A DNA stretch of 64,000 bases. Origin: Trichosphaerium sp. ATCC 40318. Lineage: Eukaryota; Protista; Tubulinea. The stretch's first letter is position 1. Every line of letters starts with the position of its first letter. The notes beneath the pieces were generated by a model that did not search any database, was not told where the DNA came from, and saw only the letters and a program-made list of their open reading frames with translations. Positions 7,901 to 61,273 of the stretch are shown in pieces. The position numbers and the translations under genes were made by a program. The stretch is taken from positions 62,001-126,000 of the forward strand of contig JALMLS010000030.1 of NCBI GenBank assembly GCA_038496445.1, read 5' to 3'.

Positions 7901-10051
7901 CAAGGATCTTTCACAGTCTTGTCAACATTCACTGGAGAGCAAGGAATGCTAAACGTACGTTGCCAGGATATTGTAATTACCTTATTTTGGATAGGGCTCT
8001 TTGGTTGATAGTAAAGATATATATAGCCTTTCCTTTGCACCAACCTGCTCTTCCAAGGTGGCTGGTGTAAGCTTTGAAAATATGACAATCGAAAACAAAG
8101 GTGTTGTCAATGTTGCACCATCAGTATCGAATACTCTATACATGCCAAATACCCGTATAGTCAGCACAGGTTCTAGCATATTTTATGTAAGCAATTTCAT
8201 GTTCATACATGGTCAATCAAGTTCGCTGCACATGAAAAACAACTCAACGCTGGTCATGAACGTGCGTATTATTTATCGAACAAGTCTCTCCAGCTAACTG
8301 AATATAAAGGGTAAAATTGTGCTGAAATCTATTCACGTTACAATCGATTCCACAAGCACTGTTAACACTACAATTGGGATGACAGAAATCTCTTGTACTA
8401 CAGGCACAATTATAGATATTTGTACGTATATGTGTAGCTTCAAGAAATGAGATGGTGTTACTAACTGTATTATAGCTGGTACAGTAAACGTGAACTTTAT
8501 TGCAGAAACTTTCACACGTGCTCCACAAGTAGGCTCTGAATATGTCTTGATGTCGTTTGAAGCAGGGTCTTATTTAAGAAACAATGGAACTTTTGTGCTT
8601 ACCGACAGTACTGGCGCAGCTATTCCAACACAACTTGTCATCACTAATACATCAATGTCTCTAAAGATTCTGGAGAAACAAAGAGTTGTTAAAGAGTGGA
8701 GTGCATGGGATGATATCTCAACCATTACCGTGGTAGTGCTAGCTTCTATTGGCATCATTGTCACATTGATTTGCTTCTTCACGCTTGTTTGGTTCTGGTA
8801 TGTATTACTTTCTTCTTATCTTTAACATGACAATAACAAAGGCGGTCGTCTCCAATACTTAAAGCATCAACTCGAGAATTACTTGTAGTTGTTATACTTG
8901 GCATCATATTTTTGTACTCAGGAGCAGTCACGTGGTACGCAGTTCAGACTAAGTACTTCGTTGACTCATTTTGAATTTACTAGGATTGTACCAGTATCGA
9001 CTCCGTTTTGTGAGCTAAGGATATGGCTTCCTTTGATGGGCTTTATAATGGTTGTAGCGTGCGTATTAATCGATAACACTTTTCTGGTTTTTTTCTTAGT
9101 CACTCCGCAGGCCATTGATAGCAAAGACATACCGCATTTATCTTATTTTTGGTAAACTTGAGAAAAGCCCTTTAAGCATTGTATCAGTATCTCTAAGAGT
9201 AGTCCTCAATATAGCTGCACTACTGATAGCTGGTCAAATAGTATCCCTTAATACTTTTCTTCTTTTTTACCACGACATTAAATCCCTTAACTCACCATCA
9301 AGGTAGCTCTAATAATATGGTCAGCAATGTCACCAAATCGTATAACATTCACTCCTGAGCCTAAAGACGATGGTTTCAAACTTGCTCAATGTACAAGCGA
9401 GTTTGCACGTGTATTCTTGATACTCACCATTGTTTATGACGTACAATACCACTAGTTCACTTTTGTCTTTTGCAAGCTTTATTCTAACTACAAGATTCCT
9501 AGGGAGCTATTCTCGTGTTTGGTGCATATCTGGCGTTTGCTGTAAGAAAAGTACCTAATGTTTATAATGAATCGAGATGGTTGGGTGCTGCTATTTATAG
9601 TACACTTACATGGGCGATTATTCTTGTAGTTTTAGGTTACACAACGAACTCCCCGTCCCTTCTAAAAACAACGAGTGTTATCTTCTCAACTGCGATATTA
9701 TTCAGCGCTTCAGGCACGTGAACAAAAAAAAAAGGAGCACTTTAAAAACTGTGTTTTTGTCCGACGCTCTCTAACCCTCTTAGTCATACTTGCTGTCATA
9801 TTTGGTCCGAAACTGTATGTGGTACTCTCTGATAACGATAATGCAATTAAAAACTCTGAAATGTACGCTTATATTGATACATCTCTAGTAAGTGGTGCAT
9901 TATTAACTTTTTTTCTTCTCCTAGAGAATTGGATTTGAGTTGTGTATCAGATGCTACAGATATAAGTGTAATAGAAAAACAAAAAAATGAGATACAGAGA
10001 CTCAAAGATAGCGTCGCACGTCTTAAACAAGAACTCAAAGAAAAATCATAA
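4938..10051 (+). CDS. Class C (family 3, GABA-B/Grl-like) GPCR with Pmp-like right-handed beta-helix ectodomain
   Basis: Signal peptide MQHPNKTLFSGFVFAFIVTFSYC. Many FxxN..GG[A/G][I/V/M/F] repeats (6480-7590). 7TM motifs CELRIWL, AKTYRIYLIF, RKVPNVYNESRWLG, FGPK. C-terminal coiled coil IEKQKNEIQRLKDSVARLKQEL. Confidence 0.85.
9241..9302 (+). other. Candidate U12-type (minor) intron
   Basis: Donor GTATCCCTT, branch site TCCCTTAAC about 11 nt from AAG, no pyrimidine tract. Splicing restores AGQI|VALIIW. Confidence 0.65.
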
Positions 10052-24881: not shown

Positions 24882-27296
24882 TTATGATAAACTTTCAGTT
24901 GCTTTTGTTGAGCTTGATACACTTATTGTCCTTGATAGTATTAAAGCAGGTATCATTAATGGTACAACAGCCATTGTTGTAACAACAAGAACACCACTTG
25001 TTACGATATAATACAGTTGATAGTAACGTTTATCAGGTAAACCAATAAGAAGAACAAAGAATAGGAGTGCTGTCACAAAAATCAGCGACCAGAGTGAAGA
25101 AGAACGTACACAAAATGAAAAAGAACATGCAAATCCAAAACGATAAGAAGTGGAAGAAAGGCTTGGTAAAAAGACAAAAAAAAAAAGGGAAAAAGTCACA
25201 TAATTCCTTTAAATGGTATGGTTCTCAGCAAGTTTGATTTTTTGGTTGGTAAAAGTAACTTCGGTGTGTTGATTAATACGTACCAAAGACTAGTGAGTTA
25301 TATACTGCCAAGTTGACATATTTTTGATCTATAGTTTTGAACTTTGAACTTAGCTTTCTTACTGTAAATGCTAGCCACCCAAATATCAACAGCAGTAACG
25401 TCTTGAATGTTGCAGATACAAAAGCAAAATATATATTCACAGTACATATACAATCAACAGTATCAAACCTACAAAGGAAAGAAGAACTTAGCATTTCTTA
25501 AAACAACAAAAAAAGAAAAAAAAGTCTTACATTGTTTTTACTTGCTTATGTACTGGCTTTGATGGAGCGAATATTTGCCAGAACGTCAAGAAAACAACGT
25601 CTACAGTAAGAAGAACAAGTACTATCCTTGCAAGAAAGACATCTCTGATAGCAAACACTTTAACAGTCTTATTGTTGAACAAAACTGAAAGTCTCCAAAT
25701 CTTTACCAAAGGACCAACAAAAGCCTTTTACTCTATTAGTCACGAAGAACACCCTCAATTTTTGAAAAAAATATGTGCACGTACTAAAGAAAATCCTATA
25801 CTCATAGTCCATATCCTCATACCACATGTAAATGATGTAGGTCTTCCAAGCCAGAAGAAAGTTGAAGATATAAAAATAGAAAATCCAGCAAGCGACAAAA
25901 CAGTGAACCAAAACCCCGCTTTCTTACGAATAATATGAGCACCACGTATGATAACAACATAAGTGAGTAGAACGATCAGTAGAAGTGTCATAAAAGAGGC
26001 GAATACAACAATCACATAAGTCCCAGGACTATCAAATACGACCCATTTCTAACACAAAGAAATTAGTAAAACAATTTAGATTCCAATGTAAATGCCTTCG
26101 TACTTGTATTTTAGGGGCAACAATATCGCAATTCTGTCCTTCCCAGCCAATATCGCATTGACATACAAAAGTAACATTGACAGCAACACAAGTACCCGAT
26201 TTTTGATCGCAACTTTTTAAGCATATTTCCTCATCGTCATCGAATACACCAACGTTGTCAAGCAGGGAAAATACAGCTCTATAATTCAAAGGAAATGTCC
26301 ATCTATCATATTTTCCATTTACAGCAGCTGTAGAGTTTGAAGGTATCTTGAAAAGCTGCGTGATCAACAACCTTAACAGATTTCAGTGAAATAATAAGTG
26401 TTAAGTTGGGTTACCTTATGTCAAGTCTTTCAAAGCCTCTACTCGTAACAGCGAAAGGCCATTCAGGGTAAAGTCTTGTAGTATGAGGGAATACAAAGTC
26501 AGAGGTTATTTCTTCAAAAATCTCGTATTCTTCGGCGTATTGAGGGAAGTCTTGGATGAATTTCTCAATTTGATCAGTACGTATAAATCCAACATCTGTC
26601 ACACCATCAAAAACGTTTTGAGTGATTTCATTTTGATTTGGAATGAAAGTCACGTTCAGTTTTGACGTATCAACTCCTCTCTCCTTCAAGTATCCTATCT
26701 GCATGAGGTAACCGCCAAGTCCAGTCGTACTAACGGCTTGAATACGAGAGTTTACAATATCATCAATAGTCGTAATATTATTTCTCTTTAACGTCAATAT
26801 AACTCCTCCAAACTGGTCCAACGCATAACCTTGGCGTAGATTTACCAGAGTAGCTATACGAGAAATAGAATAAGACGCCTACAGAAAATCCGTTAGTTTT
26901 TGATGAGTTGCATTTTATTTACCTCGAGGATGCTGTATTGGCCAGGGTTGGTTAAAACGAAATCTAGAACCCCATCTGCCACTGCTTCGCCGAGTTCTGT
27001 AAAGGGCAGGGCTGAAATTGAAAAAGTATGCGAAGCACCAAGGCTAGTTTCAGAGTTGTCTTGTAGGTACTGTGCTGTTGCTGTCCATTGCGCGATGGCG
27101 TTATCAACGCCTCTATTGGCTAGCACTCCTGTCAAAAAGTTAGTACCGCTTCTGCTGTTGTAAGAATACCAATAACGAAGTGCTCAGCACAAACTGATGT
27201 GAAGAATAGAGAAACAAGAACAACTCTACAAATTGTATAAGAACGTAAAATATTTTCTGTAGAGCAGCGCCACACTTACAGATTTCTGTAAGACAT
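24882..27296 (-). CDS. Class C-type GPCR with a PhnD/TtrS-like periplasmic-binding ectodomain and an EGF-like module
   Basis: Signal peptide MSYRNLVVLVSLFFTSVCA. Binding domain IGVLANRG..QW..LDFVLTNPGQY..FGGVI..GGYL..DVGFIRTD..TRLYPEWPFA..WTFPLNY. EGF CQCDIGWEGQNC. 7TM motifs TCGMRIW, VKIWRLSVLF, AFTVRKL. Confidence 0.85.
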
Positions 27297-58450: not shown

Positions 58451-60190
58451 TTACAAGGCCAATACATCTACAGGATTGTCTGTAACTGAAACATTCTTGT
58501 ATTTCTTTTGGAGGTAGCTGACACTTGGTATATTTCCTACAATAAACAGGATGAGTGTGTTACAAAAATCGATTGATAGTTGTAATGTACCACAATACAC
58601 AAGAATAGGTATTTTACTCCATTTCGTATTTTTCTTGATTATTCTTTTCACTAAGTGCTCTGCTGCTTTATCATCTCCATCACCTTTACGGTAGCTGGTT
58701 GTTATAATACGTACGCTATTGCTAGTATATCCTGCAAAATGTTGAAGCCATGCCAAAGCCTCTGAGGATGACGTCATTACCAAAACCTTTGGAGAGTGTT
58801 AGCACCCCTTCAACATATTCTATTTGGTTGCATGCCTCTGTTTTCTTTGGCCGAGCTTTTAATAGCCTTATAATATGTCGGTTCTCTTTGGAAAACTTAT
58901 CATCAACCCATAAGATGATACACTTTGCATCTCTGTACTTGATGTTGAACTTTGTGCTTTGATAATAAACAAGGTATCTCGGAAGAATCTGTTAAACGGA
59001 TAGTTAGAAGCAACTGCCAAAAGGGTTATTTCGAAGAATGTGAGGTTTAGTACTTGTTTGTTGGAGAATACAACAATGTCATCAAAGTCTGGTTTTTCAT
59101 GTTTTTTACAAGGATAACAAATGCGACTTGCTGTTTTTTTAACAATAGCATAGTGCGAATCATATCCATCCTATTTTTTCCATTGTTACACCACAACTAA
59201 TGCGTAATTTCAATGGATTACCTTGCATCCTTTTCCATAGAGGCTGTTTGGATCGCGAGGGTCAGGATCCTCAGTAGCTGGATAGGGTTTTCCCATCATC
59301 ACCCACGATATCATCATACAAGGAGTATCTGTCTTGTTCCACTCAGCATAAACCTTTGCTACAACAGCTCTATTAGCTCGGAATACATAAGATTATAGGC
59401 AGTACCATAATCTGGGTATTGTGTGAAGTAGATACCATTCCCTTTGTAATACAGTAAGTTAGACAAGTGCTTTTAAAGCAAAGGTATTTGTACCAAAGAA
59501 TCCTTCTTCTTTGTTGTTAGTTGGCTCTCTGAAGTTGTGGGTCGCAATTGAGAAACTGTTATTCTATGTACTGCGTATAAGTATAATTAGCATACTTAAT
59601 ACGAGGACAGTACCTCTGTTGTGCCATGAAGCGCACCAATCAGATTGATTTGCTCATTACCAGAAAAACGAAGAGGATAGTTTTCAAAATGGTTCATTGT
59701 ACGTTCTTGTGCTTCAATTCTATTTTTATCAACTGCACTCAAACTGCTATCGCTAATATCTGAATGATGGATTAATACAAACTACTAGCAAACGTTCTAT
59801 CACTTACCTGAAGATTTAGATTGAGGTACTTTAGAAACGAGTTGTTCATATTTTTTTTGAAATGCAGCTTCAAGCGCTTGATTGTCAAAGAAAACAATCT
59901 TTTCCACTGTAAAGAACGAGTCACTCTCAGTACCTACAAACTTATAGAACATATTGCGAGCTCTCAAGTACTCGTCACAACGCTCCTTGTTAGATCAGTA
60001 AGCAAAGACGAAATACCCAAGTCGGAAAAAGTGTTACACATACTCTGATTGTTTCGTTGCTTGTGAGAGAAGTCCATCTCAAACCTGGATACATTTTATT
60101 GTTCTCTTTCCAATCGCCTTGTTTTAAGAATTTTTCACCATGAAGACTGCTCCAAAAGGTATTTTGGCTTGCGTGTTTACTTTCGGCCAT
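58451..60190 (-). CDS. PARP-like ADP-ribosyltransferase domain fused to a C-terminal receiver-like domain
   Basis: VEKIVFFDNQALEAAF, LHGT, FG|NGIYFT, GYDSH, DDIVVF..Q|ILPRYLVYY, then IILWVDD..EALAWL..IPILVYCG. Confidence 0.85.
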
Positions 60191-61273
60191 TGTTTATGAT
60201 TAACTGCAAACAATGTAAAACTCACTGACTGCGCTTTGTAATTCCCTTTCGAAAAAATTAGCTAAAAAAATAAAAAAATTCGCTAAAAATTTTGTGCACG
60301 TGAAAGTTTTCCAAAGAACGGCAGCCAAAAAACTTGTACCAAGTAAAAACAATGTAGTTAACGCTTAAACGTACGTTAAAAGTATCTAACTTGGTTATGT
60401 GACGATATAAGCCAAAAACCTTACAAAGCGTTAGGATAGAGTTTGCAGCCAAGAAGCGAAGGCGACAGAGTTATAAAAAACTAAACCAGGTAAAACCCAA
60501 GACGAAGATTAGCTGTTAAAATTTCAAGCGTACCTGTATAAGACGTCAAACCAATAGACTATGTTTGCTAGTGTGGTCGCGTGATTTGTTTACTAAAGTT
60601 GACGCGGCTCGACCAAAACGGTTTACGGTCTGTGTACTAAATTATTGAACGCGCATGTAGGGGATTTATTATGAAGCTATTGTTTGCTTGTTCGAAAATT
60701 CTAGAAGTGCACTTCCGGTTTATTCAACAATATAAAATTTAACTAGACTCCAAGTCATGTCTTGAAAAAAAGGGCAAATAAAACCCTTTTAAAATAGCAA
60801 GTTGAAATTTTTAGTGCTTTTATGAGCGTCGGGTTTGTTTACTAGCGTGCCATTGCGTAAAGGAGACAAGTCAATAAAATCAAAATGGGTCAATGTGTCT
60901 AACGTTGCGCTACTAGCTACCCACAAAAATAAGAACAATTCTGTACCCGACAAGAGATGAACTTTTCCAAACAGGGGAAGTCAGTGGTACAAATCTCAAT
61001 AGTAGTTTGATAAAATACCAGCAAATTGCTTGACGAAGCTATCTGAAAAATTGAAGATCAATAATATGATTTTTGTTTTCTCAAGAGCACTGGCGTGTTG
61101 TAAAATGCCTTTGCTTGTGAGAACCTTGTAATCAATACGCTTTTGTAACCGCCAACATCGTGAATGAGCTTTCTGGTCATAAGCAATCCATACATTGCTG
61201 AAACTTGATTAGGCTAAAAATATCGAAATTTCTGCACAATAATCAATTCGGCCTATATTTTCTTACCAACAAC

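Follow-up and report, generated by a model that had tools for sequence, protein, structure and literature searches.

In the genome of the amoeba Trichosphaerium sp. ATCC 40318, a nine-exon gene on the minus strand probably encodes a class C, GABA-B-like G-protein-coupled receptor (GPCR) of about 613 residues, whose extracellular head is a type-2 binding domain of the PhnD family and belongs to the subfamily of sensor inputs found in TtrS-type kinases, GGDEF cyclases and methyl-accepting chemoreceptors (MCP). The gene occupies positions 24882-27296 of the window, by which we mean the whole stretch of 64,000 nucleotides analyzed here (contig JALMLS010000030.1, positions 62,001 to 126,000). The origin of class C GPCRs is commonly attributed to a single ancient event that fused a type-1 binding protein to a bundle of seven transmembrane helices (7TM), and a type-1 Venus flytrap (ANF_receptor) together with a nine-cysteine domain is typical of canonical class C members other than GABA-B. 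The gene described here would represent an expressed case of a different bacterial input module, known from two-component, cyclic di-GMP and chemotaxis signaling, on the same eukaryotic scaffold.

Reading of the sequence along with its open reading frame translations revealed open segments split by short GT..AG introns with TACTAAC-like branch sites, in eukaryotic DNA with a GC content of approximately 37% across the window. The nine modelled exons comprise 1842 nt in total, corresponding to 613 codons and a stop codon (Table 1). All motifs listed in a first-pass annotation of the window were recovered in this intron-containing gene on the minus strand, and HMMER scans of the segments, taken one by one in the 5' to 3' direction, returned PF12974, EGF and 7tm_3 in this order, with the EGF-like module placed between the two families that the annotation had named.

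The continuity of the head with the membrane part was confirmed by spliced RNA contigs from three public runs (X1, X2 and X3) of two studies. Single contigs of 1382, 1540 and 1836 nt extend from the binding domain through the EGF-like module into the 7TM part with introns removed, and the two halves are hence not separate transcripts. Seven introns, all of the GT..AG type, are spliced out in RNA (Table 1). The splice joining 25284 to 25069, which removes an intron of 214 nt, is present in all three runs; a longer last exon following the open frame up to 25199 was considered and ruled out by RNA, the true last exon being 25069-24882. A SMART-type template-switch oligo, in reverse complement, stands at the end of one contig and identifies the run it comes from as cDNA.

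The assignment of the head to the PF12974 family relies on exon 4, which exceeds the gathering threshold by itself (54.5 bits against a cut-off of 27, profile positions 80-200), along with a 16-bit match of exon 3 to profile positions 9-63; products of paralogous genes score 74-87 bits. An exhaustive HMMER search with exon 4 retrieved 2373 relatives, and about 90% of the best 150 were longer than 350 residues. Pfam identifies the sampled relatives (P0005-P0022) as histidine kinases, GGDEF cyclases and MCP proteins of bacteria that start with an N-terminal PF12974 domain. They align with the head over its full length, from the first strand to the last helix, at 37-42% identity, exon 5 supplying the counterpart of the C-terminal helices of the bacterial domains. 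The motifs GVLAxRG, DFVxTNP, FGGVI, VRTD, LYPEWPF and GWTxPLxY are common to both sides. The output of the bacterial sensors is a kinase, cyclase or chemoreceptor, whereas the amoeba gene contains spliceosomal introns and encodes a eukaryotic 7TM part along with a signal peptide and an EGF module. Ten residues show at least 90% conservation among 82 family members, and the exons of the window retain every one of them, including D-x-G-x-x-R in the VRTD motif, T-x-x-x-P-E-W, and the Leu and Tyr near the C-terminus.

Among NCBIfam models, TtrS (NF040750, an equivalog model) was the best for both head exons and outscored the PhnD model of ATP-binding cassette (ABC) transporters. With 28 bits per exon, the TtrS match stays far under the cut-off of 750 and covers model positions 12-71 and 96-222 only, and neither a HisKA nor a HATPase part is present in the gene; the match is best read as a likeness of the input domain and not as membership in the TtrS group. 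The nearest bacterial relatives score just 200-230 bits on the same model and, in view of the cut-off of 750, are themselves not TtrS orthologues.

Wherever a full-length protein was required, the public products of two paralogues served as stand-ins: P0154 (623 aa) and P0002 (563 aa), derived from intronless JGI transcript contigs and assigned to the loci C29 and C21 by branch lengths of approximately 0. Both are 55-60% identical to the gene in the window and match PF12974 and 7tm_3 over nearly the whole profiles. The two-lobe type-2 fold was found in an AlphaFold model of residues 1-345 of P0154, rather than of the joined product of this gene, computed from an 82-row alignment with a predicted local distance difference test (pLDDT) score of 88.5 overall and 94-98 in the binding domain. 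Foldseek searches with this head model returned PtxB, ArrX, AioX, HtxB and PhnD with E-values of 1e-15 to 1e-12; the top 42 PDB matches all belonged to the PhnD family, and no type-1 flytrap was among the 50 matches listed. A single-sequence search of PDB with exon 4 yielded a chance match only, a profile search being needed. PtxB, HtxB, PhnD, ArrX and AioX (PDB 5o2j, 5me4, 3p7i, 6xl2 and 6eu7) share the fold of the P0154 model at TM-scores of 0.55-0.81, normalized by target length, and at 12-16% identity. They are free periplasmic proteins serving transporters or kinases, and their Tyr/Tyr/Ser-Thr-Ser/His ligands are lost in the amoeba head. Altogether, PF12974, the TtrS model and the sensor-protein relatives bear out the proposal of the first-pass annotation that the ectodomain is a type-2 PhnD-family domain of the bacterial-sensor-input kind, and the structural matches of P0154 speak against an ordinary Venus flytrap or BMP domain.

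The last helices of the head are followed in exon 5 by an EGF-like module with the cysteine pattern C-x3-C-x6-C-x8-C-x-C-x8-C and GWEG between the fifth and the sixth cysteine. The Pfam EGF score of this exon is 19.3 bits (E 0.0014; cut-off 21.5), and the beta hairpin in the EGF part of the P0154 model has a pLDDT of just 57-64. Seven hydrophobic helices are encoded by the exons between 26048 and 24885, and exons 6, 7 and 8 match 7tm_3 (PF00003) on profile positions 3-85, 91-146 and 157-209 (Table 1). P0154 matches the same family with 115.7 bits over positions 7-241 of 251. The separate exon matches, along with 53% identity of exon 9 to the sixth and seventh transmembrane helices (TM6-7) of P0154, place the 7TM part in class C. 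A cysteine before TM3 (exon 6) and two cysteines in the loop-2 part (exon 8) follow the class C pattern and are predicted to form a disulfide.

Among solved chains, the 7TM of P0154 is closest to subunit 2 of GABA-B (E 1.7e-14; PDB 7c7q and 6uo8), followed by mGluR3. Instead of a type-1 flytrap head and a nine-cysteine domain, the gene combines the type-2 PF12974 head with a linker made of one six-cysteine EGF-like module, which is a difference from canonical members and no ground for exclusion from the 7TM family. The nine-cysteine domain is missing from GABA-B2 as well. GABA-B, in contrast to the amoeba receptor, carries a type-1 flytrap head without an EGF stalk, has a long coiled-coil tail and is an obligate heterodimer, whereas the cytoplasmic tail of the amoeba receptor amounts to 17 residues. 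The linkage of the head via an EGF-like module to a class C 7TM, as originally suggested, thus holds within a single transcript.

In such a receptor, a small extracellular solute, probably anionic, would bind to the cleft between the lobes and close them. The disulfide-stiffened EGF stalk, placed like the cysteine-rich domain of other class C receptors, would pass this movement to the 7TM bundle, which would in turn activate a heterotrimeric G protein, with the receptor probably acting as a dimer. At E <= 1e-5 the G-alpha family (PF00503) gives 152 matches in the genome; these point to dozens of G-alpha genes and, with them, to the existence of downstream G-protein machinery. Prediction of an ectodomain homodimer gave a score of 0.38, compared with 0.32 for one control, and speaks neither for nor against a dimer.

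The same head joined to 7tm_3 was also found in Chrysoparadoxa australica (CAM9117981.1) and in the ENA proteins P0104 and P0114, the latter encoded by an uninterrupted frame of 2355 nt (L013, 3001-5355) on a metagenome contig of 1.46 Mb (ENA ERZ26167977). Proteins of Paulinella micropora and P. chromatophora contain 3-8 tandem heads with Ephrin_rec_like linkers before a single 7tm_3. In all six dinoflagellate/marine proteins scanned (P0017, P0026, P0036, P0055, P0070 and P0139) the head is followed by Ephrin_rec_like modules, P0017 having in addition a TRP-channel segment (Pfam TRP match), and one Symbiodinium record bears the automatic name 'ttrS, partial'. Proteins of these lineages resemble the amoeba receptor in the sensor-subfamily head, the cysteine-rich linker and the eukaryotic membrane signaling domain; they differ in the linker, which is a single EGF module in the amoeba, in the number of heads and, in dinoflagellates, in the TRP-like channel segment used as output. 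As a side observation, the heads of the Paulinella proteins P0001, P0003, P0004, P0010, P0057 and P0083 recur with a period of about 375 residues, and these models may merge tandem genes. A further dinoflagellate/marine protein with the same TtrS-like head is P0024.

In a tree of the heads (IQ-TREE, 85 rows, 264 columns), all seven rows from the amoeba group together (100/100) as the sister of a Chrysoparadoxa/dinoflagellate clade (99/93), and this pair nests among bacterial sensor domains (95/89); the Paulinella heads constitute a separate clade (100/98). The first-pass annotation had viewed the gene as a bacterial two-component sensor rewired to a GPCR. Since the eukaryotic heads nest among bacterial sensor domains, this is a fair description of the origin of the input domain only, and the part of the claim that concerns a whole two-component sensor does not stand, no kinase part having been taken over. 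A single clade of all eukaryotic heads was not rejected by the approximately unbiased (AU) test (p 0.49). Two or more independent acquisitions by eukaryotes were considered and are unsupported by this test; one acquisition and two would both fit the tree. Because the 7TM parts of the lineages are merely 20-26% identical, a single origin of the fusion itself is not decidable from them. A word-based homologue search with the 7TM region of P0154 recovered P0154 and P0002 only, the 7TM being too diverged for that tool.

Within the amoeba genome, PF12974 matches six loci, and at five of them, including the gene described here, the match is followed within a few hundred bases by a 7tm_3 exon in the same orientation (Table 1). 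A search with the TM1-3 exon detected only these five loci at E <= 1e-6, despite 146 matches of 7tm_3 genome-wide, which indicates that the head and the 7TM part diversified together. Comparisons of this gene with each paralogue gave a proportion of nonsynonymous differences (pN) of 0.28-0.31 and of synonymous differences (pS) of 0.72-0.82 (saturated). As pN lies far below pS, long purifying selection on the paralogues is indicated. A tract of 331 bp in exon 4 (26485-26815, minus strand) differs by 3 mismatches from the paralogue located 39 kb away (C114:128033-128363), whereas the remaining exons are 65-73% identical to it. Recent duplication, which the pairing of the two genes in the tree could imply, was rejected, as the similarity is present in exon 4 alone and the other exons have diverged as between any paralogues. 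The restriction of near-identity to this exon points instead to recent gene conversion confined to the ligand-binding exon.

The sixth and strongest PF12974 match (C128:82885-83403, minus strand; 116.9 bits) stands without a 7tm_3 exon in its vicinity. The open frame at this locus includes an N-S-L-S-G loop, nearer to the Ser-Thr-Ser oxyanion motif of true PhnD/PtxB, and the protein may be a different one, transporter-like or differently fused. The locus was left out of further comparison on account of an internal stop.

One possible but doubtful candidate for the ligand of the head is an oxyanion of reduced sulfur, thiosulfate or tetrathionate, as in the TtrS and ThsS kinases. This is a guess only, derived from the weak resemblance to TtrS and from the published view of TtrS and ThsS, which have been described as kinases with PhnD-like sensor domains (PMC5408782). 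The rank of TtrS as the best model for both head exons is in its favor, and the glycine-rich loop at a helix start and the near-invariant Arg of the VRTD motif, both of which are kept, would suit an anion and could hold its charged groups. Nevertheless, the score per exon is far from the equivalog cut-off, the nearest bacterial relatives are not TtrS orthologues, and the tree contains no bona fide TtrS or ThsS row through which the heads could be tied to these kinases.

Several points weigh against the interpretation of the gene as such a receptor. Ligand binding, G-protein coupling and dimer formation are predictions, and the structural and full-length Pfam evidence comes from the paralogue products. 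A Pfam scan of exon 9 alone gave no match. At the 5' end, the X2 contig begins at 27294, beside the template-switch oligo and two bases inside the predicted ATG, and the predicted intron 1 is retained in the X2 and X3 contigs, which have lost the other seven introns; the stretch between the contig end at 27294 and the first confirmed splice contains no ATG in frame. Efficient translation of this copy is therefore a prediction only, given the retained intron and the position of the contig end. In addition, the X3 contig carries a 1-nt deletion in a GGGG run at 25914, in the TM1-3 exon.

The retained intron, the contig end and the deletion might be expected of a transcribed but poorly translated or decaying paralogue with four sister genes acting as the functional receptors, an alternative that we consider unlikely, somewhat more so than a sulfur ligand. 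None of the eight downstream exons is interrupted or out of phase, the residues invariant in the family are preserved, pN falls well short of pS in comparison with every paralogue, and the recent gene conversion keeps the ligand-binding exon nearly identical to that of the neighbor. Contigs drop rare isoforms and hence leave room for a longer 5' end, and the deletion at 25914 affects a homopolymer run and is seen in neither X1 nor X2. Seven further single-base differences, likewise absent from X1 and X2, were observed in the X3 contig and, like the deletion, may be explained by another allele or by assembly error.

The start at ATG 27296 is a model, not an observation, because the X2 and X3 contigs run unspliced through intron 1; it is supported by the reading frame, the signal peptide and the layout of a paralogue. 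Removal of the 54-nt intron after this ATG restores the frame with exon 2, and the predicted product then opens with a typical signal peptide, in which a short stretch with charged residues leads into a hydrophobic core and small residues mark the cleavage site ahead of EHF. The neighboring paralogue (C114b, 39 kb away) likewise has a first exon of 17 nt, followed by an intron of 53 nt at the same place and in the same phase. Two other solutions, namely a 23-nt intron after ATG 27296, which is out of frame and implausibly short, and a non-AUG start at GTG 27275, were considered and replaced by the 54-nt intron model.

Less probable still is a receptor for phosphorus nutrients, the head of which would bind phosphate, phosphite or phosphonate in the manner of PhnD and PtxB. 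The Pfam family of the head is named Phosphonate-bd, and PtxB, PhnD and HtxB are the nearest solved structures. PtxB holds the phosphite oxygens by Y49, Y94, S124-T125-S126 and H155, plus a capping Tyr (PMC5700983), and in a profile alignment these positions correspond to F, F, G-L-G, Q and F in the amoeba gene. The oxyanion motif of Tyr, Tyr, Ser-Thr-Ser and His (STS-H) is thus absent from the exons of the window. Across the sensor subfamily, the same positions are predominantly occupied by F, F, (S/G/A)-(L/F)-G, H/Q and F; in the 82-row family alignment, 46 of 80 rows retain the first Ser and 40 of 80 the His. PtxB was the reference for this residue mapping, the sequences of TtrS, ThsS and E. 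coli PhnD being outside the alignment. Owing to the replacement of the PtxB ligand residues, canonical binding of phosphate, phosphite or phosphonate appears unlikely, and the higher score of the TtrS model relative to the PhnD transporter model points in the same direction.

That the head and the 7TM part are neighboring genes with separate transcripts, or that the bacterial-looking part is a contamination or mis-assembly, is hardly conceivable, as the RNA contigs bridge all domains and refute separate genes, the head itself is interrupted by GT..AG introns of 41-44 nt, and in each of five paralogues a 7tm_3 exon comes after the PF12974 exon in the same orientation.

The proposed class C receptor with a sensor-type head has published counterparts in its general design, and the fusion is not a one-off: public proteins of several protist lineages show the same arrangement, and type-2 heads on class C receptors have been reported earlier (PMC5168858, PMC3971589). 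Anaerobic gut fungi possess class C GPCRs with type-2 solute-binding heads, some of them with EGF-like domains (Seppala et al. 2016, PMC5168858). As in the amoeba gene, a bacterial-type type-2 head replaces the ANF/Venus flytrap on a class C 7TM, the nine-cysteine domain is missing, and the receptors are uncharacterized. The gut-fungal heads resemble sugar-uptake binding proteins, whereas the amoeba head is a PF12974 domain of the bacterial-sensor-input subfamily. Furthermore, OpuAC and Bmp heads have been reported across eukaryotes (PMC3971589), and PBP_like_2 is among the domains in a survey of amoebozoan GPCRs (PMC10445921). A literature search for a PF12974 or TtrS-like head on a GPCR found no paper, the supplement of PMC3971589 being outside its reach. 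By itself, the finding is an uncharacterized family member and a variant of a published design rather than a new principle; the design is present in several protist lineages and uncharacterized in all of them.

It may tentatively be proposed, as one of several possible histories and not a likely one, that a TtrS-like input entered eukaryotes once or twice and became a portable head on GPCRs of the amoeba, Paulinella and a stramenopile alga, as well as on TRP-like channels of dinoflagellates. If so, these proteins would constitute an unrecognized chemosensory system with which marine protists detect a dissolved anion, for example thiosulfate, tetrathionate or an organosulfonate, and the five paralogues of the amoeba, in which gene conversion affects the ligand-binding exon only, would form a small family of tuned receptors. 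As the head is about 40% identical to bacterial inputs, its ligand could be sought with the purified ectodomain or with a graft on a bacterial kinase reporter. The ligand would reveal which dissolved compound is perceived through a shared head by marine amoebae, Paulinella, stramenopile algae and dinoflagellates.

Table 1. Exons and introns of the receptor gene (window positions) and related loci of the genome.
Feature	Position	Strand	Description
Exon 1 (predicted)	27280-27296	-	17 nt: ATG and 14 nt, start of signal peptide; based on frame and layout of paralogue C114b
Intron 1 (predicted)	27226-27279	-	54 nt, GTAAGT..TAG, phase 2
Exon 2	27170-27225	-	Signal-peptide core and cleavage region, first binding-domain strand HFVIG; RNA-covered
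Intron	27129-27169	-	41 nt; spliced out in RNA; its splicing assembles the motif HFVIG/VLANRG
Exon 3	26923-27128	-	N-terminal part of PhnD/TtrS-like domain, VLANRG ... DFVLTNPG; PF12974 profile 9-63; both flanking introns RNA-confirmed
Intron	26879-26922	-	Spliced out in RNA
Exon 4	26415-26878	-	Binding-domain core: FGGVI, STTGLGGY, VGFIRTD, TRLYPEWPFA; PF12974 54.5 bits
Intron	26372-26414	-	Spliced out in RNA
Exon 5	26104-26371	-	Last binding-domain helices (WTFPLNY) and EGF-like six-cysteine module
Intron	26049-26103	-	Spliced out in RNA
Exon 6	25785-26048	-	TM1 to first half of TM3, conserved Cys before TM3; 7tm_3 39.1 bits
Intron	25725-25784	-	Spliced out in RNA
Exon 7	25531-25724	-	Remainder of TM3 (KIWRL motif), TM4, start of extracellular loop 2; 7tm_3 28.7 bits
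Intron	25469-25530	-	Spliced out in RNA
Exon 8	25284-25468	-	Loop-2 cysteines, TM5, intracellular loop 3, start of TM6; 7tm_3 18.7 bits; pieces adjacent in RNA contigs
Intron	25070-25283	-	Spliced out in RNA
Exon 9	24882-25069	-	Remainder of TM6, TM7, 17-residue tail, stop codon 24884-24882
Loci with PF12974 and 7tm_3	C29, C114 (two), C56, C21		Five loci
Sister gene	C114:126435-129869	same strand	PF12974, EGF, 7tm_3 layout; about 300 bases past the window end

The 146 genome matches of 7tm_3 were counted at E <= 0.01 and indicate a large expansion of class C receptors in the amoeba. Further matches of the family on the contig were located at window positions 9491-9718 (plus strand) and at C114 positions 59931-60212, 165686-166150, 174939-175640, 190753-191418 and 193959-194510.

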